Source: Oculina patagonica (taxonomy: Eukaryota). Taken from it: 64,000 nucleotides of DNA. The stretch covers positions 25,916,001-25,980,000 of the forward strand of contig NC_135763.1 of assembly GCF_052425735.1 (NCBI RefSeq), in the 5' to 3' direction. The notes under the pieces are model-generated. The model did no database searches and was not told the origin of the DNA. It saw only the letters and a program-made list of their open reading frames with translations. Of this stretch, positions 550 through 26,114 are shown piece by piece. The translations under genes were made by a program, and so were the position numbers. Within the stretch, counting starts at the first letter, position 1. Each line of letters opens with the position of its first letter.

Positions 550-618
550 TTCTGAATTCTCTTTGGTGTCTTCAACAGAAATCCCAGACCTCTGCAAAGT
601 TTCATAGAAACTGTGTGC
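550..618 (-). CDS. GRL exon 2 (AHSFYETLQRSGISVEDTKENSE)
   Basis: 69-nt phase-0 exon bounded by ...accgacAG and GTAAGC on the minus strand. Resembles exon 2 of the plus-strand GRL (TNSFQKILQTYPVSTADEVK). Later exons presumably lie left of the window. Confidence 0.75.
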
Positions 619-2086
619 CTGTCGGTGACAATTTTGTAAAGTTAGCTGTGATCACTATCATTCGAAGCAGACACCGCGTTTTCTTGTTTTAATATTTTTT
701 TCATAATATTTAATTTTTAATTTATGTTCCTGGTGGACATAAAATGTGCAATTTACAATTACTGTTTGTAATCTTCTTCCCCTCAAACCAAATGTTTTTC
801 TTTTTGCAAACCATGCAAGCTTATTAGCTATATTTAGCATAAACTTAAGTTAATATGTTTTTTAACTTTGCTGGCTTATTATTTTAGGGTAAGCTTTATT
901 TGACGAAATGTTTTTCTTTTTTTTTTTGCCAAAAACAAAATGGACTTATAATCCAAGCCGTTTTAAGTCCATTTTGTTATTCAGTGAAAAAAAAAAGCTG
1001 ATCTCAAAATTATAAAGCAGTAAAGAAAAATTTAAATGTTGATGCGAAATATAGCTGATAAACTTGCATAATTTTCAACAAGTAATGAATTGTTTTGAAG
1101 GAAAAAATACTCAAAACAATCCTTGCAATTACACATTTGGTAGCATTGAAAAGTAATAACACAGCAAGTGGAAAGCATTTTCAACCAATTTTTTAAATTT
1201 GTTTTTCAAAGATGTCGATGCTGCTTCACTTGTAAGTGTTTAGATAAATGGTCTGTTCATTTAGAATCAAGGATAGCTTCGCCATGGACAGTAAACGGTT
1301 GTCATATCAAACTGTACTTGTGCCGGGATAAAAAAAAAAAACAGAACCTCTTATACATCGAAGATTGCTTAGCTGATACTAAGAGATTTTAGCTTAAAAA
1401 AGGGGCAGCACTTTTTTTACCTCATTACTGATTTTTATTTTTGTTTTAAAGTTGTCTGCTCCAACTAGAGAAACTTCATCCTGAAAGTTGCATTTAAAGA
1501 GTGAAGCAGTCTAAGGAATTTCCAAGATAGAAAAGTAGCACACATGATAGTAACAAAATTCCTTTTCACAATTATGCAAAATATACCCGGAATGTAAAGA
1601 AAAAAAATACAATTTACTTTAAAGATGCTTTTGTTTATTAAGATGAAATATTTATATAAGTGCCCCAATTAACTTATTTTTTATTACTTTTTAATCTACT
1701 TAGGGATTCAAACACGACAACAATTAAAAAAACAAAAACAAAAAGTCACCCGTTATGCAAACGAATTAAAAAATTAAACTCAAACTTTATGAAACGTCTA
1801 CTGGTTACCATGGCTTACAGTAAACAACAACAACAACAACAACAATTAACACGTTAAAGTAGAAGCTTAGAGTTTCAGCGAATTGATAAAGAAGATCAGG
1901 CAAAATGACCGAGTCCATATTTTGACCTTTTTTTTTTCATTTATCACACAATTTTTGCTGCATGATTAAAAAGAAACGAGAAAAATGAAATGCTTTTATG
2001 TTAATTATTGATAAGATGCGTATTTCGAGTAGAGATGGGTGGGAATCAACGAGAAAAAAAAAATGCAATATTGTCCAGTGGCTTAC

Positions 2087-3106
2087 CTTTTCCTTAACCC
2101 GATTTCCAAAAATGAAAATAACTATCACCAAAGTAGACATGCAAAAGCACCAGTAGACATAACACAAAACCACGATGGTTTCACTTGGCATCTTCATGAG
2201 CTGATAAAAGTTGACGCATAGCAATGGTATGTCCAACGAAATGATAACAAAGAGGAGAGGCGAAAACACCGCATTAGCCAGCTCCACGATCTCACATAGT
2301 TTGAGGTGTTCCTGCCTCAAGTGGTTCACGGTAAAAGAGTAGATTAAATCCTTGCACATTTTATTTTGCAAGGTCTCGAACATTCTTTCCAGGAGCATGC
2401 AAGTGACGCAGAAGATCAGAGGTGGTAAAGTCCAAGCAAACGAATTGAGAGCCGCAAACACCAGTTCCATCACTCGAACCGTTAAGTGCATGCTTGGATG
2501 TCGATTCCATGGTGGCAACATAAAGAATACGCCGTTGAAACGAACACTGAGAAGGCAGATTACGATAAAATTGATCCCAGCTGCTAAACACGCTACAGCC
2601 AAGCTCTTCGCTGCTTTCCCCTTCATCCCATCAATCTCGGTCGCTGTCGTGTCAAAACTGGAGATAAATTTTGCAAATCTCGATCGTCTTTTGCCCGTTA
2701 ATGGCAAAACGAACAAGCAAACGGTTGTGCTACTTGCACTCTGAATATACCAAGCGGTGGTGAGCAATAAGAAGAAAAAAGAGCTCATTGAGGAAAAACC
2801 AATGTGAAGGAGACTTGTCACACATAATACCACCATTAGCCATTGACCCAGAACGACAATCGCGCTTGAGAGGTGCGAAATGTACAATTTCCTTCGACCA
2901 CTGCTATCAGCCAGTGCGGTCTCGCCGAAATATTGCCCCGCCAATTTCATAGCGGTCAGAATCGGACGGAAAATCTCTGCAAGCTGCCTTTGACGATTCG
3001 ACCCCATTTGGACTCCGCTCTGATTTTCTTCGGCTAGAATGGAGTTATTAGTCACAACCACTTCCCTCTGGCTTATTTCTAGCACATGCACTGTTCGAGG
3101 CAGCAT
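2087..3106 (-). CDS. Gustatory receptor-like (7tm_7/GRL) gene A, large first exon
   Basis: 340 codons with about six hydrophobic segments and the motif LRQEHLKLCEIVELANAVFSPLL. Ends at a phase-0 donor AAG|GTAAGC (2081-2086). The ORF-track tail 1937-2086 is intron read-through. Confidence 0.85.
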
Positions 3107-3169
3107 AATGTATGTTTTTTAGCTAGGTCAAGCCTCCGCGGTCAGTAAACGTCGTAGTCTAGACCGACG

Positions 3170-3245
3170 AGTCTTTTCAGTATTTGTTTGTAACGACAAT
3201 TCAATGCGAGCAGGTGTACTTGCAAACTCTATTAATTAAAAGAAC
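3170..3245 (-). promoter_or_regulatory. Putative proximal promoter block conserved between GRL A and GRL B
   Basis: ttcagtattt...gcaggtgt(t)acttgcaaac.ctatt is shared with ~26187-26252. Contains an E-box (CAGGTG) and an AT-rich TATA-like stretch about 100-130 bp upstream of the ATG. Confidence 0.35.
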
Positions 3246-5446
3246 TAGGGGTTTACAATATTAAATTGTCACACAAAAATACATTATTTTTGTACATAAC
3301 GACCTCGCCAAAATCTTCCATTGTTATTAATGTAGTAAATTGAGTACTATTGGTTTTCGGAATTCTTTTTTCTACCTGGTTTTCAAATTGAAACAGCAAT
3401 GTTTGTAAACAGTAAGTCATCCTGCCTTAAAACTATTAAAACTAGCAGACAAACACCCGTAGCTGTTCTTTGTTCATAAAAATTAAAATTCATGTCAAAC
3501 TGTTAGTCGCTAACCTTAGGCATTATGCTTGTACCGGTTAGTTCTATTGAGAAACTCATAAAAAGGAAAAAAAAAACAAGTCCTTTTAAAATTTCAGGAA
3601 GGACTGGTTAACGATTTAGATTGGCCGTGAACTAATCCTTGTTGTCAACAGCAAGCGCTTATCTTAAGTACTAGTCTAGCGATTCCCAATTTAGTCAGAG
3701 GTTTTTAATGTTTTCAAACCCAATATTCCAATTTGATAAACCATGTGTGCTGTGAGATTTTTTTTACAAATTATGTAGTATTTGTAGCTTCCTTGTATAA
3801 TAATAAAAGCTATCTTTTATAAAAATAATTATTCTGGAAGTGTTAGTTAAAATTTATTTGTTTGAACTGTGTCAACTAGAATCTTCAAGTTCTATTTCGT
3901 ATGTGAGGATTTAATTGCTATCTTTTGTGCCAGGAAAGTTAATTGATATATCACGCTGTTTTCAAATAAATTTCATAGAGTCATTTTTATTGTTTTTACA
4001 AAATTGTTATGAAGTACCAAATATGAGTTTTAAAATAGGTTGTTTTTTATGTCATCTTTCTGCAATACCTAATATCATGATAATATATAATTGTTGCATT
4101 TCAACCATTCAGTTATTATATGGTCTCAAATTTGGTTGTAGCTATTTATTGTTTGGATGCTTCAATGTCACTGCCCGGCCCTCTGATTTGTTTTTGACTG
4201 AATAAGGTTTATTTGGTAAAATTTAATTCACGTCAAGTGAACCATTTCAAGTAGTCACAATGGAAGCTCCAATGCTGAAACTTTAGGATATATAACAACT
4301 GTTATTATATTTTTTTCAGGACCTAGAGTGCCTAGTGGCACATGAAGCAGGAAGCTTCCATGAGGGTTCTCCACTTATTACACGTCAGCAATAATCCACC
4401 AATCAAATGTCTACATTATGGCCACGTGCCGATCCATTATTCCACTATTTTGGACAGCATTCAATTGGACAGAGAAATATTGGTCAGAGATCATGCAGAA
4501 AGTAAACATTAGGGTCTTTGCAGAAAAACAAATTTGTTCATTTGAAAGAGGTCACTTCAATACCTGGATATTCGAAGCATGAGGATTTTTGACAGTTGTC
4601 TACAATGGCTTTTGGACCAAAAAAAAATCCAAGAATGGCGCTCAAGACGATTATAGATCGTAAACTCAGTGCTAACGTGGATCGCGCGGCCATGACAAGC
4701 TGTGACAGATCGACTGAGCAAATATATATTCAGTTCTTTACTCTTTTCAAGACGATAAGCAAAATTGCTCCGAAGTCACCAAAGATTTTAAAAAGGTACA
4801 AGAGAAATACATTTTTTGCAGTATTCGTTTTGCTCCATTTTGAGCCTTTTGGCCTTGTGTGGGATGGATGTGATTTATTTCACTTCAAGTAAATTCAATT
4901 GTTTTCTATTGATAGGTGGTTTATTTCTTTGGTTTAAAAAAAATACTTATAGGGTTCATCGTGCCCCAGAATTAAGTAACGTCTCAAAGTTTTCTACTCC
5001 AAAAAAAAGAATTTTTATCATAGAAATTGGAGTTAAAGAGTATGGAAACATGAGGAGGAATGAATTATATAGCACACTAGACAGTTAAAAGTTTTGCCTT
5101 TCCGGAAAAGGTAAAATACATCAGGAGTATAAATTAAATAAATGCAATTTATAATTAATACAAAGCTGCTTTTGTTTATTAAAATGAAATAGCTATATAA
5201 ATGTACGGAAAATCAATTAATTTTTAATTATTTTTATTCTATTTTAAAAAAACGGATGTTTAAACAAAAAGACAATTAAAAAGAAAAAAAGAAATCCCCT
5301 CAGGCAATAAAATAAAAATAATAAAAAAAATATTAAAATGGTGGGAAAGCCCCACACAAATTAACGGCACCAAATTTGAAATTTAAAAAAAAATAAACTT
5401 CTATTGTTTGCTATGGCTTACAGCAACTTCAACGGCAACAAAACAA

Positions 5447-6247: not shown

Positions 6248-6730
6248 TAACCCTTTAAGTCCTAGCCACGCATATATGCGTGGAAAATACCAGCAGTGAT
6301 TGAAAAAACTCTAGCTTTTACATATCTGGGCACATGATAGTAATGACTGCTTTTTATGGCAAAGTGATAATTTTCATAGCTTTAAAAGCCAACTAACTGA
6401 CTAAAACTCTTGATTTCTGTTGCATATGGTTGTTTGTTCAGCAGCAAATCTGAAAATGCCCGTTTTCTACGTAACAGGACAACAACAAAAAACACACATC
6501 TTTGCCTCCATTTTTTTTAATGAAAAAATAATTCTGACTTCAAAAATATACATTTGCAGCAAACTTCAACCCTATTCCCTTCCGTTCACCAAGGAAATTT
6601 CCCATCAATCATTCAGCAGACTCAGCAATTACTATTCGATTAGAGCTATGCTTGCAAACCTGTAATTTCCTCGTTGCTGACCGAAAGGGATGCTTGGGAA
6701 AAACAGTCATGGCGACGGCATGAAAGGCTT
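6248..6730. mobile_element. Possible piggyBac-like MITE remnant
   Basis: Begins TTAA-CCCTTT. Right end is degenerate (gaaaggctt), with no clean TSD. Confidence 0.3.
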
Positions 6731-6744
6731 CCTACCTTTATTCC

Positions 6745-7328
6745 ATATACTCGAAAGTTCAGTAAAGGAAAACGCCAAAACAGTAAATGAGATGGAGGCT
6801 GGAGTTACTGCTCTAAATGCCGATGTGGAAGAAATCAAAGCAAAAGCCGATAAAACCAGTTACGAGGTAATTACTCTGCGCCAGCAACAGTGGTATTTAG
6901 AAACATACCAAAGAAGGGAGAACCTTCGTTTTCATTGGATTCCTGAACGACTGGATGAGCAGGAAAACACCAGAGAAGTGCTGGTTAACTTTATGATAAA
7001 CGAGCTCAACCTCGAAGACGCGCCACAAATCGAATTTCAACGGGTACATCGAGTAGGCAGGTTTGACGCATCACAGCACAACCCACGCCAGATCATCGCT
7101 CGCTTTCTCCGCTATGGGGACCGGGAGAAAGTTTTTTCTCAGGCAAGACAACTTAAAGGCACAGGTATGGGAATATCTCCCGATCTCCCTAAAGGAGTCG
7201 TGGATATCAGAAAGAAGCAGATCGAAACCTTGAAAAAGGCTAAAAAAGAAGGCAAAAGAGCTTATTTCAGTAGAGCAGAGCCGGACAAACTGTACGTAGA
7301 TGGACATTTAATCCCTGTTTCAGAGTAA
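6745..7328 (+). CDS. L1/Tx1 ORF1 (coiled coil + RRM/CTD), 5'-truncated
   Basis: RRENLRF..IPE, IEFQRVHRVG, PRQIIARFLRYGDRE and DKLYVDG motifs typical of L1 ORF1. Confidence 0.85.
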
Positions 7329-7750
7329 TTCAGTTTTAAGTTATAAAGTTGTAGGCCTTCGGTTGAACTTTGAAAAATTTGAATATTCTGGAGCTACCGT
7401 TATGCAAATTGATAATTAGATTGCAAGATTCGGTTGCTAGCAGCTAATCAACAGCTTTGCTGGTTGCTTATTTTAATTACTGCTGTGAAGTGTTTTTTTC
7501 TTTGTTTTTTTGTGTTGGTTGCGCTTTTGTTTTTTTCTTTACTTATCAATATGGTAGTATTAATTGTCGCATGTAGTGTTCTTTGCATTATCTTATTGTT
7601 TTCAGCTTGGTGTATTTTATCGAGCGTTGTTTTTGTTGTTTTTGTTTTGAGTCTGTGCCTTGCATTCAGTTTATATCATTACCAGTCGCCATATTGCATA
7701 TTTTTAGAAGTCATGATCTTGCTTAAAGCCGTTATTATCTTTTTTATCTG

Positions 7751-8371
7751 ATGGAGGAAAACAATTTCCAATTTAAACTGCTTTCTTTAAATGTAAGAGG
7801 GATCCGTTCTTTCGAAAAAAGAAAATGTATTTTCAACTGGTTGCTTAAGCAAAATGCATATATCTTTTTTCTGCAGGAAACGTACAGTATACAAAAGAGA
7901 TTGAAAATCAGTGGCGGAAACAATGGAGAGGAGAGTTGTTTTTCTCTCACGGTACATCGCGCAGTAAAGGCGTCCTTGTTTTAGTGCGGGAAAATTTGGA
8001 TTTTAATGTTAATTCAACGCATACCGATAATTCGGGAAGATTTGTTATTCTAGATACCTTAATTCAGGACTCGCCGTTTCTTCTAGCAAATATCTATGCC
8101 CCAACAAAAGGCTCTGAACAATGTCAGTTTTTAGACGAAATTGCTAATCACTTCGCAGACAAAGTATGTCAATCTAAACATTATATTATTACTGGAGGTG
8201 ATTTTAATGCTACTTTCGATCCAGATCTTGACTGTTCGGGTGGAAGGCCTTCCATAAAGAATTGCATTAAGAACCTCAATGATATTATGCTACAAAATGA
8301 CCTGGTCGATATATGGAGAGTGCGCAACCCGAACAAAAAGCGCTTCACTTGGAGACAGAAAAATCCATTAA
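7751..8371 (+). pseudogene. Host L1 ORF2 part 1: APE endonuclease (frameshift near 7885)
   Basis: SLNVRG, FLQET, NIYAP, GGDFN and DIWR..NP...FTW motifs. Breaks at KNPL. Confidence 0.9.
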
Positions 8372-10399
8372 AGCAAATTTATATGTAATAAAAATGCCAA
8401 TTTACATGTAATATAAATTAAAGTTAATGTGACAACCATGAAAGGAGTTCAGAGAAGTCATAAGATCACTCTATTCAAATATGCAGATCTGTCACGTAAT
8501 ATGCTACAAGACTATCACTCTTGCGTTACATTCAAAGGTCAAATTCACTTCTAGAGTGTGATGCGCTATTTGGGCTGGCCAATCACATCGCCCCCTTTTC
8601 TATTATGTCAATCAAGGCCATGCGGTTTTATCTAGACTTGAGTAGTATAGTTTTACTTCAAATTCTCTGAGCTCCCTAGAAGAGTTTTCACAATAATTAT
8701 TATTGCTGTGATATCCTTCGATTGTTTTTTTGCTTCAACATCGCTCCATCAGTACTTTATGAGTTATCCTGGTATCTCCCCGCGAACTACGTTCCGGTTT
8801 TACACATTTTATTCTGTCGTTCGAAGATAAATATGCGGACGATCTGTCGAAGGCCTCGCACTACTGAACAAGTATTCGGTCCAGCAACTGAGGAACTTGA
8901 TATGCACACACAGAACGGATTGCCTCTACCGGAATATGGCCACTCTACCGACTCGGCTTCAAGGTCCTGTGGTCTCCAAACCGCGGCTAAAACAGCAAAA
9001 AGCATGAACCTCACAAAAACATTATTTGTATGGTGGAGACAACATGCCTTCGTTTGCCCGAGATTATGTAATGTGAATGAACGACTTATAAAGAACAAGA
9101 CGATTTCTTCAACTAGAAAATACTATTCTCTTGTCAAGCCGGAGAACAGTCAACAAGGGTCATGGCCGTCGTGAATGTCTTTCAAACCTCGTCTAGCGCG
9201 CCTTCTCTCCCGCCGAAAGTGGTCAGTAAAAAAAAAAAAAATTTGACAAGCAATCCGGATTTCCCTGGGGTGCATCTTGGCCAAGTGGAATCCAGGAGCT
9301 TGCTAAAAGCTAAGTATAAATATTTATAAGCTGATTCTATTTTGCGTTATATCATAGTTAGTAGAGTTTTATTCGACCGGCGTTAAATGAGATTTCAATA
9401 TGAAAACAAACGAAACTTAGAGCAATTTGCAGGCTGCCGTTTCCACCAGCCGTCGTAAAGCCTAAAGGGCTGGAAGTTACAAGATATTCGCTATTGTTAT
9501 CTTCTGCAGCGTTCGAAGTCATGTCTTAATACCTGAGTAGACGAGACCCTTTATAATTTGGCTGCTCAAAGTTGAGGAAGAGTGACATAAACTTAGCTTT
9601 GCTGGAGGCTAGTGTGGTGAATTCTCGTCCCTTGTCACTAAAGTCAAAATAGGACAAATAACAACTCAAAGCAACGAAAGTTCTCAGCTTATAGAATACT
9701 TTATGAAGATTCTGAAAATGTAAAGAGTTTTTACATTTAATGCAAGGAATTTGAGGTATTTAAAAGTGCCATTGTGACTGCCATTTTAACAAAAAATAGG
9801 TTATAACTCAAGGGGAAATTGAACAATTGTAGCAAGAATTTGATCCAAACATACAGGGGCGTACCTGCCTTTACTCGTAGCACTATAAATTGCCTAGGAA
9901 CGCCCCTGACATAAAATACAATAACAGGACTTTTTACGGGAGTATGTCACAGGAAATATAAAAGTGATGATCCTAGGATCAAAACATAAAATTTTGCTTT
10001 GCAGTGAATACATTACCTTGTTTATGCAAGAAGCATCAAACAACTCACGACATACTCGAAATTCTAACCATTTCAAGCCTGCCAAATTTAGTGGCACAAG
10101 GATAAATCTAACAGGAGCTACTCTATCTACAATGAATGCATGTCTGTGTCGCAAGTGTCTAAATTGTTCAAATACGCCTTATTTTTCGCACCTTCTTTCC
10201 TAATTGATTCTTGTGCGAGTTCTGCCTTCCTGCCATGTTTCTCAGGTCAGCAATGTATAATTGCAGTGGTGAATAACAAACTTTTGCTCTGTATAAGGTC
10301 TTTCTTTCCGTTTTTCCCAGCACTCATTGAATTCGTGCTGTATCATTCAAAGGGAAACCATGAATTGGCATTTTAGTATTAACAGTCTTGTATTTATAA

Positions 10400-11065
10400 A
10401 TCTATCATCATCATCATTTTATCTGCCACTTCAGAATTACAAATACAAATTAAAATAACTTAAAAGATAGGGCGAGGAGACCTCCAAGAAACCACAAGGC
10501 TTATGGGGGAGGCTACCTCGGGTTAGCAATAAGTTTGTAATTTCGCTGTGAGTGTGCAGCTAGGTCAATTTCAGACTCATTTCCTGGTAGAGAATTCCAA
10601 ATTTTAGGACCCTGGAAAAGTATTGTAAACTGCTTTAGATTTGTACGACAGTGATGTGGTCGATAACACTTGGCTATTCTTGTATCATAACTGTGTATTT
10701 GACTACTAGTAGAAAACAAATTGAGAAACATCGGGGGCAATAATTGGTTAAGATAGTAAAACATAAATTTAGCTATTTGCAATGCATTAACTTGAAGATA
10801 TCTAAGATGCCCAGTTTAGCAAATAAGGGGGCAGAATGTTCTCGATAGTCTGAGTTGGTAATAGCTCGCACAGCACATTTTTGTAAATGAAAAATTCTAT
10901 TTAAATTAGCTACATAATCATGTAGAAGACCAGGCTGAATTACAGTTAGTGATATAAGGATAAATTAAGGTGTAGTACAGAGCAAGCTTAGGATTAGATG
11001 ATAAATAATATCTTGACCTAAATATGACACCAACTGACTTAGAGATTTGTTTACATACTCCTTTA
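10400..11065 (-). mobile_element. CR1/L2-like LINE 3' fragment
   Basis: QIAKFMFYYLNQLLP..HSYDTR..GPKIWNSLP C-terminal motif. Upstream decayed LYYTLIYPYI and HSAPLFAKL-like sequence. Confidence 0.75.
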
Positions 11066-11074
11066 CGTGTATGA

Positions 11075-11216
11075 AATGGCTAGGTCACACCTTACGGATG
11101 CCTTCCTGTACCATCACAAGGCAAGCTTTGTCCTGAAATCCTCAAGGGAGTTAAAAGAGAGGTCGACCATGAACACCTGGAGACGTTCGCTAAAAGCAGA
11201 GATCAAGTCCATGGGC

Positions 11217-11250
<34 letters not shown>

Positions 11251-11876
11251 CTTTATTTAAACTCGAATTTAGAGTAGCTTGACAGCTAATATTTCCGAGA
11301 ACGAAAAATAGAGAACAAAAAAAAAAAAATAAAATAATAATAAAATAAAAACAAAAGTTACTATTTACATATTTAAAATTGACTTATATTAACTAATTAT
11401 AAAATTGTCATTTACATGCTTCATGAATTGGCTTTGCAGATGTACCTTTTAAAGTCAGATAAGTTACATAGCCTTATAAAATTAGGTAGAGAATTCCATT
11501 CTTTTGTTGCCAGATAAGTAAAGGAGTGGAGACCAAAAGTTGTAGTTCTAGGTTTGGGCATTTCCAGTATATAGTTTCCACGCAGGTCGTATGAAGTAGA
11601 ACGGAGCGAGAACATGGATTGTTTCTCATATAGGCGGGATAGTTATTGAAAAATAGACTTTTGTACAAGATGGTAAGGAATTTACAGATGCATTGATCAT
11701 GAAGTTGGGACAGTTTATCATGTCTTGCAGCACATTATAAGGCAATTCAAAATCACTTAAAATGAATCTCAGAGTTGGTACCAGCTAGAGAGGGATGCAC
11801 GGGACAGGATGCTATGACGAGAGACTGTTGATGGTCTATACTCCTAAGAAGGAGTCGAGCGAAGGGCTACTACTAC
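11075..11876 (+). mobile_element. RTE-clade LINE 3' fragment, split by a CR1-like insertion
   Basis: WLGHTLRMP..ITRQAL..NPQG..KRGRP..TWRR (~11077-11215) resumes as WYQLERDARDR..VDGL (~11776-11850), followed by a (CTA)n tail. Confidence 0.65.
11216..11770 (-). mobile_element. CR1/L2-like LINE 3' fragment with (ATT)n tail
   Basis: YDLRG..LEMPKPRTTTFGLHSFTYLATKEWNSLP. AATAAA plus (AAT)n microsatellite at 11216-11258. Confidence 0.75.
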
Positions 11877-12062
11877 TTATTTACATGTTAACTTAAACCT
11901 ATTTTATATTTGTGTGGTGTTCGTCTATGGGGAATACACTTCGTGTATTTGTGGGGATGAAGTGCTCTGTACCATTCGCCCTTTTGCCCCATAGCCTCAC
12001 AGGGTCAGCTTTCCCCTTATAGTGGGGACCCCCCAGTGTTGCTGTTGTTGGTTGTTGTGATT

Positions 12063-12846: not shown

Positions 12847-15137
12847 ATGGCGGAAAGTGAGGAGAAAAAATTCGAAGCAAAGCATGTCTCTTTCGAAGAA
12901 ATATTTAGCAATATTGACTCGGAGAATCTGCCTAAACTTAGCAAGGAAAAGCTACACTATTTTTGCAATGCCCTGAAACTAAAAGTATCCGGCGAGAAGA
13001 AAGAACTTGTACAAAGATTAGAGCCACTCAGTAAGTGCAAGCAGTTGTTCGATAAAAAAGTCGCTCGAATCCAAGAAGATTATAAGTTCTCTACTGCACT
13101 GGATCCTCTCTCGATTCCATCTCCATCTGCGAAGTGGAGAGTCATTGGCAAGAACACAGATGTAGCCGTACCGATCGTTACCGAAAGTACCATTAAAGAA
13201 TACCAAAAAGCTAAGTATGCAGGGGGAAAAGGCCAATACAGGAAGGCTTACCGTTTGTTTTCTTCGAGGAGAATAATGTCCTTGAGAGCTGCTGAGTGTA
13301 GTGAGCATTCTGGCGCTCTGTATGTAAAAGCTAGTATTCTTAAGTCGTATACAGGGAGTGTCACTAGACCTGCGACCATCCTTTTTACTAACAATATACC
13401 TGTCAAAGCATATTGTGGATGTGCAGTTGGGAAAAGTGGACTGTGATGTCATGTGATAGCCCTCTTGATTGAACTAAATTACTACCATGATAACAAGAAA
13501 CTCTATCTTAACATGTCATGCACTGAGAAACTTCAGAAATGGCATAAGAAGGGAACTTCAGTGACCGAAAGGGCGGCAACACAAATCAAGTTAAAATACT
13601 TGAGAAATCTACGTGGAGCAAGAAGAGATATCAAGAAGGTCAGGGCAAAGAAAAAGGTTCTGAAGCCAACTAATGATACCAGCGACTTCAGTGACTGGTA
13701 TAAGAGAGACGTTTCAGAAATGGAAGAGAAAATAAAGGCCAAACTTGATACAATGAACCCTAGCCAGCCAAGCATTGAAAGTCATTTTTTCTCAGTTTTG
13801 TCACAGCACAAAAAAAAGTCAGGCCTATTCCTACATCTAAGGTACAAGACTGAATTTGAAAACAAACAAAATGGCAAGAAATATGATGAAGACGTATTGA
13901 AACCAAGGTTCGGAGAGAGTACAGAGGCTGTTTGGAGACCAAAACGTGTCCCTCTTCAGAGGTTGATCAAAGTGTAACTAAACAGCAACCTAGCCTCTTG
14001 AAAAGAATTAACTATGTTCCGGTCAATCAGTGTACTAATGACTGGAGGGCTCTAAGAGTTGGAATAATTACTGCCAGCAAAGTTCCTGCATTGCTTGGCT
14101 TCTGTGGGATGAAAGAATTTGACACTGCCTGGTTTTCAATAAGGAATAATATCGATGAAAGTGTATTGAACCCCAAAAGATCTAGATTACCCAACTTTAT
14201 CCGAGGCAAGCAAGAAGAAAGCAATGCTCTTGCCAAGTTTTGTGAAGACTCTGGCTTTAACATCAGTGAGTGTGGATACTTCAAACACCCCAAGGATAAG
14301 AGGTTTGGTGCTAGCCCGGATGGAGTAAGCACTGGAGAAGTGGAATTTCTAGTTGAAATTAAAACTCGATCCCTGCAAATAGAAGTCAGCTAGCAAAGTT
14401 GAAACAAGAAGAGGTTGAAGCAAAACTAAAAGCAGCTCAGACTCCCCTAACACAAGTTAGTAAAGTGAAATTCAATATTTTCCTGCTTTTATTTCTATTA
14501 ACACCCATCTTCATGAAAGTGCCAATCCAAGGTCATAAAATGGAATTTATGTTAGGAAAGTCTTTGATCTAAATCCCACTACTACATCTACTTAAACTCT
14601 GCAGTTTCAGAAAATATCCATACCCACCCCATTAAAGGTCATTGGAATTTCAGAGCTTTAATGAAACTTCTAAAGGGGTGGGGGTTTCAACCCAGAAAAA
14701 CCTTCTTGGAAGGGGATGGATATTTTCTGAAACAACACATTCTGCAATGAAGGTAACATTTTGATTAATATGCTGCCACTTTCCCTTTATTTCAGATTAC
14801 AGGGAGTCATCTTGTCCAGTGCCACTTACAAATGGAGTGCACAGAAACATCATTAGTTTACTTAATGTCCTATGTCCCAGAAAACAAAGCCACAACTTAT
14901 TTTCCTGTTTCAAAAAATCATGTTTTAAGCGAGATCATGCTTGAGTTGTTGGTACACATGTTTGAAAATAAGCCCTTATCAGACCATTGGGCATATTTTG
15001 AGCATCCAAGCCTGGTGCAACTGGGAAAAAAGCTTGAAGGCTCGGTGCCTAGTTTTGAAAATACGCGGCATTTCAGGTCATGGGTTAACTCACAAGCAAA
15101 GCTGATAAGGTCTGTTAGTCTTCCAAAAAATAACTAG
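12847..15137 (+). pseudogene. ISL2EU accessory gene: SAP - SWIM - YqaJ (lambda-exonuclease-like)
   Basis: SAP-like LSKEKLHYFCNALKLKVSGEKKELVQRL. SWIM CGC..GKSGL*CHV. YqaJ Q...W...R...ITAS, GASPDG, VEIK, QCHLQM. In-frame TGA at 13444, frameshifts near 13950 and 14385, probable intron ~14456-14796. Confidence 0.85.
14595..14740. repeat. Short palindromic MITE in the YqaJ-gene intron
   Basis: gtttcagaaaatatccat ... atggatattttctgaaac inverted ends. A related decayed copy lies at ~15300-15440. Confidence 0.6.
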
Positions 15138-15580
15138 TGTGCTTCTACTTTGTTCAGTATGTTGAATGACCACTACCAGACCTTTGCCAGGAAAAGTCTA
15201 AATTTCAGGTCCAAGGTAGACCAGTTCATAGCTGTACACAATTTTTTGTCATATTTGTCATGATAATATCTGTGCACATAACACTAAGAGTTGTAATAAG
15301 TAATTTCAGAAAATATCTGTACCCCCTGCATGGTCATTATTCCAAATTTTAGAGTGTCGGTTTTATCAGATTTAAGGGATTTCCCAAATTTGGGGGAAGT
15401 TAACTTTTTTTCAATTAAGATATTTCCTGGAATAACCCAGTGCAAAAAAAAAAAAAAAAAACTACAAATGTACATTTTGCTCTCCATTGCAAATAATAGA
15501 AACTGGACAGGTTTGTAATTGAAAGGTTATGACCTTATGAAGTAAGTTCACTGACTGTAATGAAAATGTAACTAATGGAC

Positions 15581-17364
15581 TTAAATGAAAAATGCAAGTG
15601 GTGCTGTGTCATCATGAGACAGTTCCCTTGACTTTGATTTAGTTGCCTCCTTTGCACAGATTGGGTCAAACAACATATTTACAATGTTAGCCAACACTTT
15701 GTACACACATCCTAAAATGTCACACCTGTTCTTTGGCCAGCAAGCATTCAAAATTGACCAATCCCGCATACGTCCAATGTAATTTTCATTATATATACGT
15801 AGGGTGGCCACATCAAAGTTCTTTGCTATATCGGTCTCCTCATACTGTGCATCAAACTTCATCGGAGGGCGATTGTGGGACAAGCCTTTGACGTGACATA
15901 AGTCTTCGATACCCAACCCTTTATCTGTAAGCACTGTAGCACCTTTGTCTTGTATCATATCCAGCACCCCACAGTCTGCAGTTAACTCATTATCAGTGGT
16001 TGCCCCTGGATATGTGTCAGTGCACATCACAAGACTGCCAAAAGGTGTAATCCAAATTCCTGTTTTCCCAGTGTCGTGGTTTTTATATGTACTGAATGTT
16101 GCACTGCTGATGTCAAAGTTTTCTGGTGAAGCAATCTAATTCTCTGTGCAGTCTCCCAGCAACACTGTGTCCTGGAAACCCGATGCATAAAATTCCAGAG
16201 GTAAAAGAGAAAGAACCTCACCAGGGCAGGGACTCAGGTCTAATTGATCAAACAGAGTTGATAAAAAAAACAGCCCATGCTGTAAAGATTCTGGATTGAG
16301 TTGAAATACTGGTGCCTGTCATGTATCCAATAATACCAAGGTGAAGTGTATGCCGACATATTGTCATAAAGCACATCAATTCAGTTCTTTTTGTCAACTT
16401 TCTTTGATGGTGAGTTTTACAATCAGGGTAAATTATGGCAGGTATGTAGGGCTCCACACAAGCAAATAGGCAATCAAAGTCTTTAACAGAAAGTCCAGTC
16501 ATGTAGAAAAACTGCTCAGGATTCTTTTTCAAGCATTTGTATGAAAAAGTCGTTTTTTCAGCCCTGTGAGCAAATTGTTTCAACTGAGACTGATATGTCT
16601 CATTTTGAATTTCCAAGTTTTTGACCTGATCACTTAATTGGTTTACTTCGGTTGTCTTTGTTCTCAGCTTTTCTTTAAGATCATCTATTTCCTTTTGCAA
16701 AATTTCAATGTTCTGAGAAGGCTCATTACAGCTGGAGTAGGAGAGAACCCTTCTTTTCTTTTTCTTGCTGCCCTCTGACTGTTGTAGACTCTATTTTCTT
16801 GAGTGGGGTTGTTTTTTTAGTTACGTTTTTCTCAGCAAATTTAGGCTCGCAGGGCAAATCTGGGAGATGATTAATGTTCTCCCTCTCCCCTTTACTCCAG
16901 TGAGCTGAGCAAATAAAGTCCCGAGTAAAGTCAACTCCCTTGTTTTTTAAAATATTATTGTACTCACGTCGTTTCTCGGGGCAGCTTGCGATTTCCTTCA
17001 GTCTGTAATATTTTAATGATTTGTTTTTAGTGCGCCAAGAATTCGTGCAAAGCGTAGCAGCACAGTACCAGTGTTCTCTCTTTACTTTTGGCGACTTTAG
17101 GTTCCCTGCCTCGGTAAACTTGATGTTTGGCAGGTCATCTAAATCAAGCCTTTCTCCTGACGACCAATGCTTCGAGCAGATGACCTGCTTCTTGAAATTC
17201 ACTTCGTTTTTCCGCTTTCCGAGCACATCCAAATAAGCATCCTGAATCTTTTTTGAGGCGGAAGCCACTTTAGTTAAAGTGTAATAATGTACCTTTGCGC
17301 TTTTCCAAGAATTTTTACAGTAGTTACTAGCACAAGACCAGTGCCAGCCGTCGCTCGCCGCCAT
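15581..17364 (-). pseudogene. ISL2EU transposase: 2x THAP - coiled coil - HTH - DDE
   Basis: Two C..C...C..HW THAP-like modules, YMTGL/HTH region, and LLGDCTE, FSTYKNHDTGK, TDKG and LRIYNEN catalytic motifs. TAG at 16136-16138, frameshifts near 16750 and 16265. Confidence 0.88.
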
Positions 17365-17441
17365 CTTTACATTACAGTTTGTAAATAAGTCCGCAAAAAT
17401 CCGGTAGTACAAGGCCCCCGCGCGGCATGAAATCACGCAAT

Positions 17442-18985
17442 AGCAAAGCGAAAGCAAAAGAACGGAGAGAAAAAATAAAGCGCATTGAACATAAACTGAA
17501 AATTGCTGAGGAAAAATTAGCTGACTCTCCAAATGATGATACACAAAATGAAATTGACACTTTAAAGCGCATACGAAAAAGAATACGAGTACATTACGAA
17601 AGGAGCAATAATACGATCACGTGCAACTTGGTACGAAAAAGGTGAGAAAAATAATAAGTATTTCCTTAATCTACAAAACAATAAGAAGACAAAAAGTACT
17701 ATAAGAAAACTTGAACGCAAGAATGGTAATATTACTGTTGACCCGAACTGCATAATGGACGAATTACACTCATTTTACTCAGATCTCTATAAAGAAAAGA
17801 ACTCCGAAGAGCTAATTTCTGAAAATTGTCCTTTCTTAAATTCTGGGAATATACCTAAGCTTTCACCAGCAATGCGAGAGTTATGCGAAGGAGAGCTAAC
17901 CCTTTCAGAGTGTTTTAATACTCTATCGAGTTTTCAAAGCAACAAGACACCAGGGAACGACGGACTAACTGTAGAATTCTATAAATGTTTCTGGAAGCTC
18001 TTGGGTAGCCTGCTAGTTAATAGTCTAAACTACGCGTACAAACACGGCGAATTATCTTCCTCCCAAAAGCAAGCGCTTATCGTCTTAATTGAGAAGAAAG
18101 ATAAAGATAGACGACAGGTAAAGAACTGGAGACCAATCTCTTTTCTCTTTAATCAATGTCGACGTAAAGATTGGCACGAAAGCTATAGCTAAAAGATTAG
18201 AAAAGGTTCTGCCGGAAATCGTACATCATAATCAAAACGCATATGTTGAAGGAAGAACTATTTTCGACGCTGTCCGATCCATCGACGATATTATCAAGCT
18301 AACATCATCAAATAATATGAGCTCATTACTGGTAGCAATTGACTTCGAAAAAGCCTTTGATTCAGTGAACTGGAATTTTCTTAGACACGCCTTAAGGAAG
18401 TTCAATTTCGGCCCATCTTTTATTAATTGGATTACAGCTTTTTACTCAAATATTTCCAGCTGTGTGATGAATAATGGATTTATTACACAATCTTTTAAAC
18501 TTTCACGCGGCGTGCGTCAGGGTGATCCTCTCTCGCCCTATCTGTTCATTCTAGTCCTAGAAACACTCGCGATTCATATTAGAAATGACGAATGCATTAG
18601 GGGAATGAACGTTGATGGCCACGAAATTAAACTTATCATCTTCGCTGATGATCTCACGGTCTTTCTGAAGGATAGCGCATCTTTTCACTGCCTGTTGGCC
18701 AAGCTAGAGTTGTTTGGTCAATACTCCGGTCTGAACGTTAATTGAGAAAAAACTGAGGTTATGAAGCTTGGAATCTCTGATATCTCTGCAGAAGAACTGA
18801 AAATAGATGAAATTTAAAAAGTAGTCAAAATTCTAGGGATACATTTCACTTATGATCAAACGCTTTCAGATAAGTTAAATTTTCATACCATTATTGAATC
18901 AATTAGAAAGACACTTAACAGCTGGAACTGGAGAGGCCTCACTTTGCTAGGGAAAATACAAATAATCAAGTCGTTCGCCATTCCT
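17442..18985 (+). pseudogene. Host L1 ORF2 part 3: reverse transcriptase
   Basis: KTPGNDG, NWRPIS, DFEKAFDSV, GVRQGDPLSPYLF, FADD. Several frameshifts and stops. Confidence 0.92.
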
Positions 18986-21358
18986 TTTTTTTTTATTTAT
19001 TTATTTTTTTTTATTGCTTTACTGATTCATGCACACTACATTACAATACAATTACTGACAATTACTTACAAAGACGATTCTAACATTGCATACACTACAA
19101 ACACGAAAAAAAAACAATACTATTGTCGCTAACGTAAAGCGCTACTCCTATTTAACAAAAGTTTTGATTGATTGCTAAGCTACTTCTATTTGACACTAAT
19201 TATGCCCTATTTACAACAATGAAGATTAAGTAAAAGGACTTATTTAAAGATACAATAATTTCTCAAGAAAACTTAAGTATTTCCCATTTCTGTAGGTGAA
19301 ATTTAAGCCTGTCCCTTTTCTTAGCGATACAATATTCAATGTGTTCAATATATTTAAGTTTAGCTATTAACTGAGGTAGGAGTGGTTTTGTTTTCCTGAG
19401 CCGATTAGCGTGGACTACTTGCTTACCAGCAATGAGAATATGATTGAGAAGAGTCCAATGAGGACTTTCTTTTGTAATACCTAGCAGAATTTCGCTGTCA
19501 TTTAGCCTAGAAATGGTAATATTTAATTTATTTAACCAGTTAGTAGTATGCGTCCAGAAATCTATGGTAAATTTGCAGTGTAAAAACAAATGCTCGAGAG
19601 ATTCTTCGTACTCTCCACAAAACGTACATAACGAGGTATCTATTAGCCTCATTTTATTCAACAATTTGTTAGTATATATTATACGATTAAGAATTTTAAA
19701 TTGAAACATTCTTGTTTTAATGTCTAAAGTCACTTTTTGTGGCGTTAAATAAATTTGATTCCAGTCAAGATTTTGATCATCAAATAAAGAGTTGTATTTT
19801 AATCTTGCAGTAGGATGGACGTGTATGTTCCCTATCAGAATCCAGTACAGTCTTTTGCTCGTGAGTTCACTGAGCTTAATTTCTTCATTATTACAATTGA
19901 GCACAAACTGAGTTAAATCCAAAATTGTGGTGGTGCTCTGCTCTTGCGCATCAGGGGGTTGTGGATTTTTCGAGTTTATCAAGACTCTCCGTCTATTACG
20001 GCATTTTTTAATTCGAACTGTAGCTGTTCGTTAATGAGGACGAGCACTCCACTGCTATGATTCGAACCGTGACTATAGATCATTTCTCCACGCCATTGGA
20101 ATTTCCAATTACTAAGGATTTCTGGTGTACTATAGGTTTCTTGAAGAAACGTTATGTCACTTTTCTGTTTTTCTATCCACGTAAAAATTGATTTGCGTTT
20201 CTGGAGGTCTCGAATCCCTCGAGCATTGAGTGACATTATCTTAAAATTAACTTCTCCTATTGTGCGACTATGGTTTTGTCCTGAATAGGCTTAGCGAATG
20301 ATTATTTAATAGCGTAGCAAAACAAATGAAACTGAGAATTAAGCTGAGAATGTAGCAACATGCATAATTACAACACAAACACACAAAGAAGACTGAATTT
20401 ATCCTACTTACCGACTGCCCCAAAGCGAATTGTATGGGCGTTCCTACACCTACTGTGAATAACATTCCTGATGTTGTGTTGTGCTCCTTCTTTGTGATGT
20501 TAACTACGTATTAATTAAGTTTTTGTGATATAGAAAAATTTATGCGTTTAAAAGCGGGAAAAGGTGATTAGCATATAGTGTGCCAAGTTGTACAATAAAG
20601 AGCCGAAAACAGAAAGAAAAGCAAATAAATTATTACAATGGTGCATTACTCGGAATAAACTTTCCATTTACATAGAGTTTATCAGGGAATCTCTTGCTGA
20701 AATATACACTGCATCCTCTAGCCTTAGCATCCTTAAATTTCTTATTTTGGGATTTTCTTAGTTCGTACAATTCTTTTGGAATGTCCTCAAATACGTTGAA
20801 ATCTTTATCCTTTAATGTTTTTCTGGCTTGGCGGAGGACTAATTCGCGGTCAGAATAGCGCAAAAATCTTGCGATTACTGGACGAGGACCGTCGTCTTTA
20901 GGTTTTCCAACTCGATGAATTCTTTGAAATTCAATCTTGTCGCGTGGGTTGCTGATCTGAAGCTCGTCTTCCATGAACTTGTAAATAATCTCCTTTGTAT
21001 TCTCCACCTCGTGACGAGTGCCTTGTTCGTCTTGTTCCGTAGTATTATGTTCTTCGATTCCAATAAACATTAGGTTTTCTCTTCTACTGTAGTGTTCTTG
21101 GTAAAGAAGTTCTTTGCCTAAATCGTCCGCTTTCTTCTGCGCCGCTTTAACATCGCGTTTCAAATTGGCAATTTCTTCATCGTTAAAGTCAACACTTTCC
21201 TCAAGCTCCTTCACTGTCTTGTTGGTGTTTTTCATCTTCTCCTTCAGGTTATGAACCTCCTTGTCAAGATTGGCAACGGCATCCTCTATCTTAAATACAG
21301 CCTTGAACAGGTTATCGAGTCTGCTTTCAATATTATCTAGCTTTTGAAGCTTTGAAAG
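18986..21358 (-). mobile_element. Second L1/Tx1 element in antisense, 5'-truncated and internally deleted
   Basis: 9-bp TSD GCCATTCCT (18977-85, 21359-67) and a poly(T) at the left end. ORF1 at 20633-21358. The endonuclease start (19979-20236) is joined directly to the C-terminal zinc-knuckle region (19263-19982). Confidence 0.9.
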
Positions 21359-21367
21359 GCCATTCCT

Positions 21368-22654
21368 AAAATTCTTTATCGCCTCTCTCTTGTCTCAACA
21401 AATAAAACTTTTGTTAAAGAGGTCAATCAGGTGCTGTATAATTTTGTGTGGAAAGGCAAGGATAAAGTTAAACGGCTCGCTCTCATAAACAGTGTCGAGA
21501 ATGGTGGGTTAAATATGCCGCACATTGAGTCTCTCATTAACACGCAAAGGATAGTATGTATCAAAAAGTATTTGGGTGATTCACCCTGTTCCTGGAAAAT
21601 TATTCTCGACCACTATCTTCACAAAGTCGGGGGCAGTTTGCTTTTCCACTGCAACTTCGAGTACACTAAGCTCCCTTTGGACCTCCCTGATTACTGCAGA
21701 GAATGTCTTGCAACTTGGACAAAATTTACTGCCTCACCTGTCTCTTCAATGGATGAGATCGTTAACCAGATCTTATGGAACAACAAATTCATTTGTATCG
21801 GACAGAAATCAGTTTTTAACCGCAAACTCTTCTCCTTGGGGCTACATAAAGTTGGAGACCTTTTTAATGAGATAAACATTAAGCCACACACCACCTTGCA
21901 AAATCTAAATGCCCTGGATCTCTTATTTTTGAACGGTCTTTATGATTGCCTTCCACCTGAATGGAAGAAAGTGATGACCAACGACCCTCCATCGGTGCTC
22001 ATTAAAACTAACCATAAATGGGACGATGTGTTTTTGTACTCGGGCAATGATGCCCTTTTATTAAGTGAATTGTCCTCTAAAAAAATCTACAATATTTTGG
22101 TGTCAAAGATTTCGATTAGGCCGTCGGCAAAAAATAAATTCGATGTTTCATATGCTTCTGCAGAGCACGCCCTTGACTGGAAGAGAATCTACAGCAATGC
22201 TTTTAGATCCGCAATAGATACCGAAACGCGTGAATTTCAGTACAAGATACTTAATAGAATACTTCCTTTAAATGATTTCCTCTTCAAAATTGGCAAGTCT
22301 AACTCTCCTCTCTGCTCTTTCTGCCAATCCTCAGAGGAAAACATGTCCGACTTCTTTTTCCATTGTCCGTTGGTAGCAAACTTTTGGCAATCAATTAAGC
22401 ATCTATTGGGGGGTCATGAGCTAATTAAAAGAGAAGTGATCCTAGGGATCACCGACGCAGTTGAAAATGCATTTCTAAAGAATCATCTAATTCTATTAGG
22501 AAAACAACATATTTTCAGATGTAAACATAACAACTCTCTTCCTAGCGTAATCAGTTTCACAAAAACTTTGAAAGCAGTCTTTGATTCTGAACGTTTAATT
22601 GCTAAAGAAAATAACAAGATCAACTTTCATTATGACAAATGGAAGGATCTGTTA
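21368..22654 (+). pseudogene. Host L1 ORF2 part 4 (C-terminal region)
   Basis: AIP|KILYRL..FVWKGK..GGLN, FQYKILNRIL, CSFC..EENMSDFFFHC, KWK. Confidence 0.9.
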
Positions 22655-23988
22655 GGCTACCTCCTCTCATTGAGTCTAATGCTTGCGTGCGCTTTGCGCA
22701 TGCGCATTAGACTCTTTGTTATATGAAAAAAGCTGTTAGCAATCCCAAGGGAATGGTTCGGGATCGATAATCGTTCGCTGTAATGTAGAAAACAATGATC
22801 AGCTGCAAGAACGGACTCCGTACGGACACGCACGATTAGTTTCAATTAAAAACAGCCAATCAGCGACACGTGTTCCCACGCATAATTAAAAGTTCTTTCT
22901 CAAGTCACGATTATTCAACACTTGAACAGGACGAAATAATTTTCCAGTTAAGACATTTGTAAGCTTTTTGTGAAAATAAATCTTCGTTTTCAGTTCAGTT
23001 AAGCACTTGTGTTTCCGTCTTGCTTAAAAAGCAAGACGTCTTTGAGAAAAAATATTTCGACGGCGACTCGCGTTTATTTACACAATGCGACCAAATATTT
23101 ATTTTGTTTTAAAAAATAGAAAACTTTACCTCGGTTTTTGTATTTAAGTCATTCGAATTTTGACCAATTTTTTCTTTACAGTGCAAACAAAAACCTTCAA
23201 AAATAAAAGATGTACATGGATAAATGTAAATCAAGTTACGCGACTAAATCAAAATGCGTTTCAGTTTGGCCGCTTTGCAGTATTACACTGTCCCGGCCTT
23301 TGCCATACACTGAAGTCGAATTTCATGCTTTTACGACTCTCAGAGATCTTAAGTTCTTCTTACAGCTAGAAAAATCATAAAATGGTTACATTGATATGGA
23401 AGTGATGATTCGCGAAATTTGTACATCATGATAAACAGTCTTCGCTCCTGTGTATGGTAGCTCGATAATAATTGCCTAGTTTCCAGCGTTCAAAAGGTCA
23501 TCATTATATTGACGTGAGCATTTACACCCGTTTTTAGGAAAATCTGTCACTAAGTGCTTACAGTACAATGGAGTAACAGTCACTATTTCAAGTGCTTTTA
23601 TTGCAAAATCTGTTTCAAGAGTCATCATCAAAATGGTGAAAAATCTGAACGAAAACGATGTGAAGTTCTTCAACCTTTGTTGTAATGAACATGCTTTTTG
23701 TAAATCGTCACGCAATCTTGTCCAAATGTTTAATCGTTTCTGCTTTTACGGACAATACGGAAGAAGTAACATCAACTCCTGTTCATACTTTAAATTTTGT
23801 GAAGCATATAACATTTATGACTGTTTCGTTTTCATCCATAATCATCCACGATGCCCCTAGCTTGCTATAAGCATTTTAAATTAAACTCCCGAACACAAAC
23901 CTCTAACCAATTTTAACCGGCTTACGAAAACCGCGCAATCTGTATCACTATGCCATACGGCATTAGACTCATGTCACCCTTGGTGACC
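22655..23988. mobile_element. Non-autonomous DNA element with imperfect TIRs and TA TSD
   Basis: Ends GG..tgagtctaatgc and gcattagactca..CC. Removal with one TA restores the L1 end KWKDLLFF-stop. Confidence 0.6.
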
Positions 23989-24547
23989 TATTTTTTTAAA
24001 ATAGCTGGCAAGCTCGTGGCACTTCTTGTCTCGAAACAGCTATATCTAATCAATTAAAGGCAACTTACTGAACTGTATGTCGTTATACATATATATTGTC
24101 TGTAGGCATGGCACTGTCTTTGTGTTTTATGATTTTTTTTAAGAAAAATGTAAATTTATTAGTGTAATGTAAGAAGTTAATTGTAAGTTATGTACTGTAG
24201 GTTATTCTAAGCTATATACTGCAAGTAGTGTATTGTAAATAAGTCACAGAGTTAAGTTATAAGTATAAGTAATGTATAATGTAATGTAACGTGAAATGTA
24301 AGTAAGTTATTGTGTGTATTGTAACCTGCTTGTTGAAAAAAAATAAACAAATTACAAAAAAAAAAAAAAAACTACAGTACATTTTAAGTGTATTTGGCTA
24401 TTCAGCATTGACCTTTATTAAGGCGACTGACTGAAACCTGTGTTTGTGCAAACCAACTCGTGCGACTGTAATCGGTTTGATTTTACTGAATATTCCTATT
24501 ATTTACGAAAATCTGGAAGTTCCGCGGATAACCCTATTGATATAAGG

Positions 24548-24745
24548 CTGCCTCGTACCCAGGCGCTACGCTTTATACGGAATTATATGGAATCGCAAGG
24601 GATCATGGGAAGGGCGAAAGAAGCGAAGCGGCGCTCCCCGCTTTCGATCACGCCTTCCCTTGACCCTTTGCGTGCTTTTTCACGCCTTCCCTTGACCGTT
24701 TGCGTTCTTCGCCAAAAGCTCTCGCGGCGCCTGGGTACGAGGCAG
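24548..24745. mobile_element. MITE with 19-bp TIR and 9-bp TSD
   Basis: CTGCCTCGTACCCAGGCGC / GCGCCTGGGTACGAGGCAG. TSD GATATAAGG at 24539-47 and 24746-54. Confidence 0.9.
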
Positions 24746-25088
24746 GATATAAGGTACATACGTCAAAGCATATTGTTTGCCATGGCTTACAAAAACTTCA
24801 AAAAAATAAAAAAAAAACACACAACAACGGCAACAGCAACAACAAAACAATGATCACTAGATAGTACGATCTTTTTTATATATGGTGAGCAAAGTAAATT
24901 GTTAAAGAAAGTCAAATAAAGTGTCAGGCAAAAAGAGACCATATTTTACCCTTGTTATTTTATTTAATCACAACTTCTGCTTTAAGACAAAAACGTAAGA
25001 GCAAAAATGAAATGCATATTAAGTACTGCTTAGATACGCATTACTAGCAGAGTTCTTTTCAAGAAATAGCACACGTATAGAGACTTAC

Positions 25089-26114
25089 CTTATTGTTGAC
25101 CCGATTTCCAAAAATGAAAATAACAACCAACAAAGTAGATATACAAAAGCTCCAGTAGACATAACACAAAACCACGATGGTGTCTGCTTCATTTGACCTC
25201 TTGATGAGCTGATAAAAGTTGACGCACATTAGTGGTATGTCCAACGAAATAATCACAAATAGGAGAAGCGAAAATACAGCATTGGCCAGCTCTACAATCT
25301 CGCATAGCTTCAGGTGTTCCTGCCGCAAGTAGGCGATGGTAAAAGGGTAGATTGATTCATTGGATATTTTATTTTGCAGAGTGGCAAACATCTTTTCCAG
25401 GAGCATGCAAGTGACGCAGAAGATCAGAGGTGGTAAAGTCCAAGCAAAGGAATCGAGGACTCCAAACGCTATTTCAGTCACTCGAACCGTTACGTACATG
25501 CCTTGGGTTTGATTCCATGGTGGAAAAATAGAGATAACGCCGTTGAAACGAACACTAAGAAGGATGATAACGATGGAATTGATCACTGCTGCTAAGCAAG
25601 CTACAGCCAAACCTTTCACTGCTTTCTTCCTCATCCCGTCAAGCTCGGGTGCTTTCGTTGCAAAGCTGGAAAGAAATTGGGCAAATCTCGATCGCCTTTC
25701 GTTCATGAGTGGCAAAACAAACAAGCAAACGGTTGTGCTACTTGCATTCTGAACATACCAAGCGGTGTTAACCAATAAGAAAGAAAAAGAACTCATGGAC
25801 GAGAAACCTATGTAAAGGTGACTTGTGACACCTATTACCACCATTAGCCATTGGCCCACAACGACAAGCGCGCTGAAGAAGCGCGAAACGTACATTGTCC
25901 TCCGACCACTGCAATCACCCAGTGCGGTTTCGCCGAAATATTGCCCCGTCAACTTCATAGCGAACAAAATCGGACGGAAGATCTCTGCAAGCTGCCTTAG
26001 ACGCTTTGATCTCATTTCCACTTCTCTCGTATATTCTTCGTTGTGAGCAGTATTTTCAGTCTCATTTGCATCTCTTTTTCTCATTTCCAGCACATGTATC
26101 GTTCGAGGAATCAT
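25089..26114 (-). CDS. Gustatory receptor-like gene B, large first exon
   Basis: 342 codons, clear paralogue of 2087-3106. Phase-0 donor AAG|GTAAGT at 25083-88. Confidence 0.85.

Follow-up and report, generated by a model that had tools for sequence, protein, structure and literature searches.

The 64,000-nt stretch of the Oculina patagonica genome analysed here (the window; C6:25916001-25980000 of the 529-Mb genome of this stony coral) carries a GRL gene that is probably built like insect Gr28b and Gr39a: two first exons, A and B, appear to be spliced alternatively to one shared set of exons 2-4. A variable-first-exon locus had been proposed as a possibility in an initial annotation of the window. 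The proposal gained support from three copies of the unit on the chromosome, the predicted isoforms of copy 3, three other coral assemblies, purifying selection on the B-type exons and a contig of a probable RNA run that breaks at the B donor. We consider the variable-first-exon reading very likely for the coral GRL subfamily. For the window's own B exon we favour it with less confidence because of a recently inserted transposon nest and a missing junction read.

The distal exon B and the proximal exon A each possess their own start codon and upstream region, presumably with a separate promoter, and each codes for most of the receptor, approximately transmembrane helices (TM) 1-6. Both end at the same phase-0 donor position. 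In the proposed arrangement, the B donor would join exon 2 at position 618, and the two first exons would be spliced alternatively to three small shared C-terminal exons. These exons would encode the C-terminal part of the protein, including the last TM helix and, to judge from insect odorant and gustatory receptor structures, the pore helix. The locus would thus yield two receptors that differ in their ligand-facing bodies and have the C-terminal module in common.

The initial annotation had described the A and B first exons as co-oriented, intact, preceded by paralogous upstream regions and terminated at the same codon by phase-0 GTAAG donors. Each of these features was recovered at its position (Table 1). 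Both open frames lie on the minus strand, their proteins are 71% identical, and the two donors fall at a homologous lysine codon. According to blastn, positions 1896-3379 around A and 24924-26385 around B are 76.7% identical, a match that includes 3107-3379 versus 26115-26385. Further upstream, 3513-3962 and 26439-26901 are 67% identical. Altogether, the A/B paralogy extends ∼190 bases beyond the donor and ∼800 bases 5′ of the start codons.

Exon 2, proposed at 550-618, is real. It was matched by tblastn and by a profile hidden Markov model (HMM; E = 4e-18), and RefSeq protein XP_078374705.1 corresponds residue for residue to A exon 1 joined to exon 2 and to exons 3 and 4. All three introns of the A gene are in phase 0. 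Exon 2 opens with GCACACAG.. (GCACAC..); the window copy has an arginine codon (AGG) where copies 1 and 3 have lysine. When joined conceptually to exons 2-4, the B exon, which is predicted to code for a body spanning approximately TM1-6 of a GRL, yielded an open frame of 412 codons. The four-exon structure was corroborated in a related coral, in which alignment of mRNA contig L022 (identical to L027) to genomic contig L021 confirmed the boundaries of exons 1-4. This mRNA (P0015) maps to the proximal first exon of L021 and thus confirms the gene structure, not skipping of the proximal exon.

The proteins of the locus were then compared with known families. The window A protein (P0061) matched Pfam 7tm_7 with 47.9 bits (cut-off 26.6) and Trehalose_recp with 35.2 bits (cut-off 21). 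The B-type isoform (P0065) scored 52.7 and 46.8 bits, respectively, and B exon 1 alone scored 23.6 bits against Trehalose_recp. Because both families were matched above their curated cut-offs, the locus belongs to the GRL branch of the insect chemoreceptor superfamily of seven-transmembrane ion channels. These matches are shared with NvecGrl1 of Nematostella vectensis and other animal GRLs, and the tyrosine-containing motif of the last helix is kept in part. Unlike the animal GRL motif, T-Y-h-h-h-h-h-Q-F, the coral helix reads S-Y-F-V-V-L-L-T-L: exon 4 (..A-S-Y-F-V-V-L-L-T-L-P-T) retains the tyrosine and the hydrophobic stretch and has S in place of T and T-L in place of Q-F. Passages of PMC7746228 describe conserved 3′ introns and a last-helix motif in animal GRL genes, and mention GR28b isoforms. 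In the coral genes, three phase-0 introns fall within the last 70 codons in all three units of the locus and in GRL C, another GRL gene of the window. An AlphaFold2 model of P0065, calculated from a 16-row alignment, was helical throughout and had a mean predicted local distance difference test (pLDDT) score of 46, too uncertain for a fold search. A phmmer search of PDB sequences yielded no match.

If A and B were ordinary tandem genes, B should possess exons 2-4 of its own, and at 17-30 codons these exons are short enough to be missed. The initial annotation had found no such set between 3107 and 25082, and this holds. The tblastn check with A-type and GRL C exons 2-4 detected no match between B and A, and profile HMMs of exons 2, 3 and 4 (built from seven, six and five copies, respectively) gave no match better than E = 0.1 over 3107-25088. 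Nor did the profiles detect an exon 2-4 match between the B-type and A-type exons of copies 1, 2 or 3, even in the two compact spacers described below. By contrast, the true exons 2-4 scored E values of 1e-12 to 1e-24, with one set per unit in all three units. As a positive control, the same profiles recovered exons 3 and 4 of GRL genes of this genome that are only 36-41% identical to B. The absence of private B exons is therefore meaningful, and we regard undetected exons that are too diverged or too small as scarcely credible.

To place the window copy in context, the sequence was extended by 50 kb to the left and 30 kb to the right. The unit occurs three times on the chromosome, each time in the order rhodopsin-type G protein-coupled receptor (GPCR) gene, B-type exon, A-type exon, and exons 2, 3 and 4; the window holds copy 2. 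None of the six first exons has an interrupted frame, and every splice site across the three units is canonical. Between the B-type donor and the A-type start codon lie 4.1 kb in copy 1 and 2.6 kb in copy 3. The A flank of the window is 96-99% identical to that of copy 1 and ∼87% identical to that of copy 3; the B flank is conserved in both copies as well. In copy 3, RefSeq gene LOC144656577 has two isoforms that match the predicted arrangement exactly: X1 (XP_078372922.1) consists of the B-type exon and exons 2-4, and X2 (XP_078372923.1) of the A-type exon and the same exons 2-4.

Contigs of other corals were reached through protein matches of the open reading frame (ORF) type in ENA assemblies ERZ25067872, ERZ26858540 and ERZ25067556. 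Contigs L013 and L014 each contain the GPCR gene, two intact first exons and a single set of exons 2-4, followed in L013 by an ordinary single gene. Contig L012 has a single set of exons 2-4 behind three first exons, of which two are interrupted by a one-base frame shift. In L023/L026, from the same assembly as L012, two intact first exons lie in a row with no 3′ exons within the next 10 kb. All intact first exons of L012-L014 and L023 end in ..RVxxK|GT in phase 0. The frame-shifted first exons of L012 (5921-6935 and 16469-17495) could be decaying variable exons or reflect homopolymer errors of long reads.

The GPCR gene was also observed to keep its place. The single-exon, rhodopsin-family gene of the window (27691-28734, minus strand; Pfam 7tm_1, E = 3e-43) lies directly upstream of the B-type exon. 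Each of the three Oculina copies has a GPCR gene at this place, as do two assemblies of other corals (L013:4378-5421 and L014:7562-8605). The neighbourhood of GPCR and first exon is therefore conserved.

More distant relatives have a simpler structure. Each of the GRL genes of O. patagonica that are 36-41% identical to B has its own 3′ exons and one first exon, and L024 and L025, coral contigs at 50% identity, carry ordinary genes with one first exon each. Since other GRL subfamilies and the distant coral relatives are ordinary, the layout arose within corals and is convergent with that of arthropods; convergence in a cnidarian had been proposed in the initial annotation. The variable-first-exon layout is thus confined to one coral GRL subfamily and independent of that of insects. 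The tree of first exons is structured by species. Given the conserved neighbourhood, this grouping is read as concerted evolution of neighbouring exons, with repeated duplication as the alternative.

We then estimated the ratio of nonsynonymous to synonymous substitution rates (dN/dS) between first exons. Of 342 codons, 111 differ between the window B exon and the B-type exon of copy 3; both are open, and their dN/dS is 0.31 (bootstrap 0.21-0.44). The ratio was 0.18-0.31 among the three A-type exons and, for the upstream versus the downstream exon, 0.42 in L013 and 0.38 in L014. The bootstrap intervals lay below 1 for these B-type, A-type, L013 and L014 pair comparisons. The comparison of A with B, which had been suggested as a check, gave 0.41. 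In addition, 37 fixed differences separate A-type from B-type exons. Overall, the substitution patterns indicate that the B-type exons are maintained by purifying selection as a distinct, constrained sequence.

These results bear on the view that, in every copy, the B-type exon is an orphaned partial duplicate, open by chance or through gene conversion and never joined to exons 2-4. Such a view would account for B-type exons without 3′ exons of their own and for the failure to see a junction read (contigs were mapped to 20300-26200 only). The clustering of first exons by species also shows that sequence exchange or repeated duplication occurs. However, constraint and fixed differences argue against orphan duplicates, and the fixed differences show that A is not overwriting B. 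Moreover, the upstream exon is intact and has a conserved phase-0 donor in five of five cases (three Oculina units, L013 and L014), isoform X1 of copy 3 exists in RefSeq, and a contig breaks at the donor of window B. We conclude that orphan duplication is highly improbable.

The window copy differs from the others in its B-to-A spacer. Where it has a nest of ∼18 kb (Table 1), copy 1 has 440 bp; the two copies are otherwise collinear. ORFs within this segment matched Pfam RVT_1 (reverse transcriptase), zf-RVT, DDE_Tnp_4, THAP and YqaJ, identifying it as a transposon nest. The distance of 24.5 kb between B and exon 2 is therefore a recent, copy-specific effect of the nest in an ancestral spacer of 2.6-4.1 kb. 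Comparison of window 2009-31000 with C6:25875000-25891500 revealed mosaic divergence between copies 1 and 2. Identity is 97-100% over the GPCR gene, B, the spacer and the 5′ third of A, and 76-93% over the remainder of A exon 1 and exons 2-4. This pattern suggests recent gene conversion or unequal crossing-over. The B flanks are 98-99% identical to those of copy 1. Such near-identity around the nest indicates that the insertion is recent and that copies 1 and 2 exchanged sequence recently.

A repeat within the nest (22664-24042) had a contig depth of 200-330, and contigs of each of three runs of the species, X1-X3, skip 1324 bases of it (22669 to 23994). The repeat probably represents a transposon family that is expressed and carries a nested insertion.

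Evidence on the transcription of B came from contigs of X1-X3, which are probably RNA runs; none of the listed records containing the B exon is registered as RNA. Depth was high over the repeats of the nest; in the unique DNA of the mapped interval only three short contigs were found, all inside B exon 1. Depth was 0 in the intron at 24831-25087 in all runs, and no contig lay upstream of the B start codon. The 230-letter contig X2 record 14 matches 25088-25273 and extends past the donor by 44 letters that do not follow the intron. This tail fits nowhere in 20300-25088, and no run contained a joint to 21388, a position that the contigs of X1-X3 cross unspliced. Joints with sides of only 22 letters were nevertheless recorded. 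Record 14 carries the window-B allele at four of the five sites separating B from copy-1 B; alleles specific to the window are A (25092), G (25179 and 25180) and T (25260). Its alignment runs one base beyond the exon end, and this base fits the G of exon 2 (GCACAC..), not the A of the annotated transposon exon (AGAGAG..). We take these data as evidence for transcription of B and for splicing from its predicted donor to a partner beyond the nearest 4.8 kb; exon 2 would be that partner. When the C-terminal 61 residues encoded by B exon 1 were used to look for junction-spanning protein fragments from run assemblies, no candidates were returned, a blank that is uninformative. A degenerate exon 1/exon 2 junction pattern searched over JGI metagenome contigs found only the mRNA contig L022.

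Several points weigh against the variable-first-exon reading. First, RefSeq XP_078374423.1 (LOC144657965) and GenBank KAL9970421.1 splice B exon 1 to a transposon ORF (Table 1). Second, given the recent insertion and exchange, the open frame of window B says little about continued function, and the exon could have been disabled recently. Third, dN/dS between window B and copy-1 B is 0.78 (0.28-2.56), not different from 1, and with 10 differing codons this comparison has no power for the window-B lineage. Fourth, no read or contig was seen to join 25089 to 618 (contigs were mapped to 20300-26200), and the RNA type of the three runs was only guessed. Fifth, the isoforms of LOC144656577 are automatic predictions. 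Finally, the age of the arrangement is uncertain, since gene conversion or repeated duplication could explain the clustering by species.

The first and third of these points, the restriction of the nest to the window copy and a poly(A)-type loose end at 23580, inside the nest, in the PolyA-tag run would also fit a recent loss. The architecture would then be real, with working B isoforms in copies 1 and 3. In the window, the nest would have cut B off, its donor being used with cryptic transposon-derived or other acceptors or its transcripts ending early, so that no working receptor is made. Against this stand the lack of any joint from the B donor to 20300-25088 in the three runs, the post-junction base that misfits the annotated transposon exon, and the window-B alleles of the donor contig. 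Furthermore, a 24-kb intron is by itself no barrier to splicing. We consider such a loss unlikely, and the gene models that fuse B to the transposon ORF are probably wrong.

If splicing of window B to the shared exons is accepted, the locus is of a known kind. Alternative long 5′ exons are spliced to shared C-terminal exons in Drosophila Gr28b, Gr39a and Gr23a and at many arthropod Gr loci, and alternative first exons are a hallmark route of receptor multiplication in insect gustatory receptor genes. The coral locus, of the same superfamily, resembles the three Drosophila genes in that a variable exon with its own start codon codes for most of the transmembrane body, shared exons code for the C-terminal end and last helix, and the variable exons stem from tandem duplication 5′ of a conserved intron. 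Unlike the arthropod loci, it occurs in a cnidarian, has two variable exons in each unit (another coral has up to three) and is found in one GRL subfamily only, and the isoforms of the window copy are predicted from sequence. The clustered protocadherin and UGT1A loci of vertebrates likewise have variable first exons with their own promoters and shared constant exons. The coral locus shares with them tandem variable first exons, paralogous upstream regions, shared 3′ exons and neighbouring exons that appear to evolve in concert. It differs in that the proteins are unrelated and in that the vertebrate loci contain dozens of variable exons, whose promoter choice has been studied experimentally. 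NvecGrl1 of Nematostella and the animal GRL family are reportedly described in Saina 2015 and Robertson 2015 (cited in PMC7746228), both outside the literature searched; within that literature, we found no description of alternative first exons in cnidarian GRLs.

If correct, these findings would show that this architecture evolves readily, and more than once, from the ancestral gene structure of a long 5′ exon and small phase-0 3′ exons. The same solution would have been reached in the cnidarian branch of the superfamily and conserved in several corals. Tallies of coral GRLs by gene rather than by isoform would be too low, and the RefSeq and GenBank models of window B probably need correcting. 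More speculatively, and with clear doubt, the stony-coral GRL subfamily might comprise a multi-promoter locus in which a single C-terminal pore module serves two to three or more interchangeable ligand-facing bodies. It would have arisen independently of arthropods and kept its GPCR neighbour across genera, and its variable exons would evolve in concert through gene conversion. By the choice of promoter, different sensory cells might then receive different receptors, as with fly Gr28b and vertebrate protocadherins.

Table 1. Features of the GRL locus. Positions without prefix are those of the window.
Feature	Position	Strand	Remark
A exon 1 (A-type, proximal first exon)	2087..3106	-	340 codons, no stop, ..GNRVKEK, AAG|GTAAGC, phase 0
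B exon 1 (B-type, distal alternative first exon)	25089..26114	-	342 codons, ATG to ..GNRVNNK, no stop
B splice donor	25083..25088	-	AAG|GTAAGT, phase 0
Shared exon 2	550..618	-	23 codons, AG acceptor, GTAAGC donor, phase 0 at both ends
Window-copy exon 3	C6:25915358-25915447	-	left of window
Window-copy exon 4	C6:25914599-25914652	-	left of window
A upstream flank, presumed promoter and 5′ untranslated region (UTR) of A isoform	3107..3962	-	inside the presumed B-isoform intron
B upstream flank, presumed promoter and 5′ UTR of B isoform	26115..26901	-	paralogous to A flank
Copy 1 B-type exon	C6:25885607-25886632	-	left of window
Copy 1 A-type exon	C6:25880456-25881475	-	left of window
Copy 3 B-type exon	C6:25985801-25986829	+	right of window
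Copy 3 A-type exon	C6:25989427-25990446	+	right of window
Transposon nest, ∼18 kb	6250-24370		B-to-A spacer of window copy only
Transposon ORF joined to B in gene models	20633..21388	-	tail of XP_078374423.1 matches exactly

A candidate exon 3 at window positions 79..1 was rejected: positions 23-311 are a dispersed repeat, and the actual exon 3 was located 553 bases beyond the left edge of the window. This repeat, situated in the intron between exons 2 and 3, has dozens of copies in the genome at 73-79% identity, and part of it mimics an in-frame exon.

The window contains two further groups of genes. GRL C (58158-61410, plus strand) is a third, distant GRL gene, ∼35% identical, with its own exons 2-4 at 60093-60152, 60410-60499 and 61357-61410. 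A frame shift near 58817 in the first exon could reflect a pseudogene or an assembly error. Four tandem intronless GH5 genes (Pfam Cellulase), some of them truncated, occupy 34405-50734 on the minus strand.

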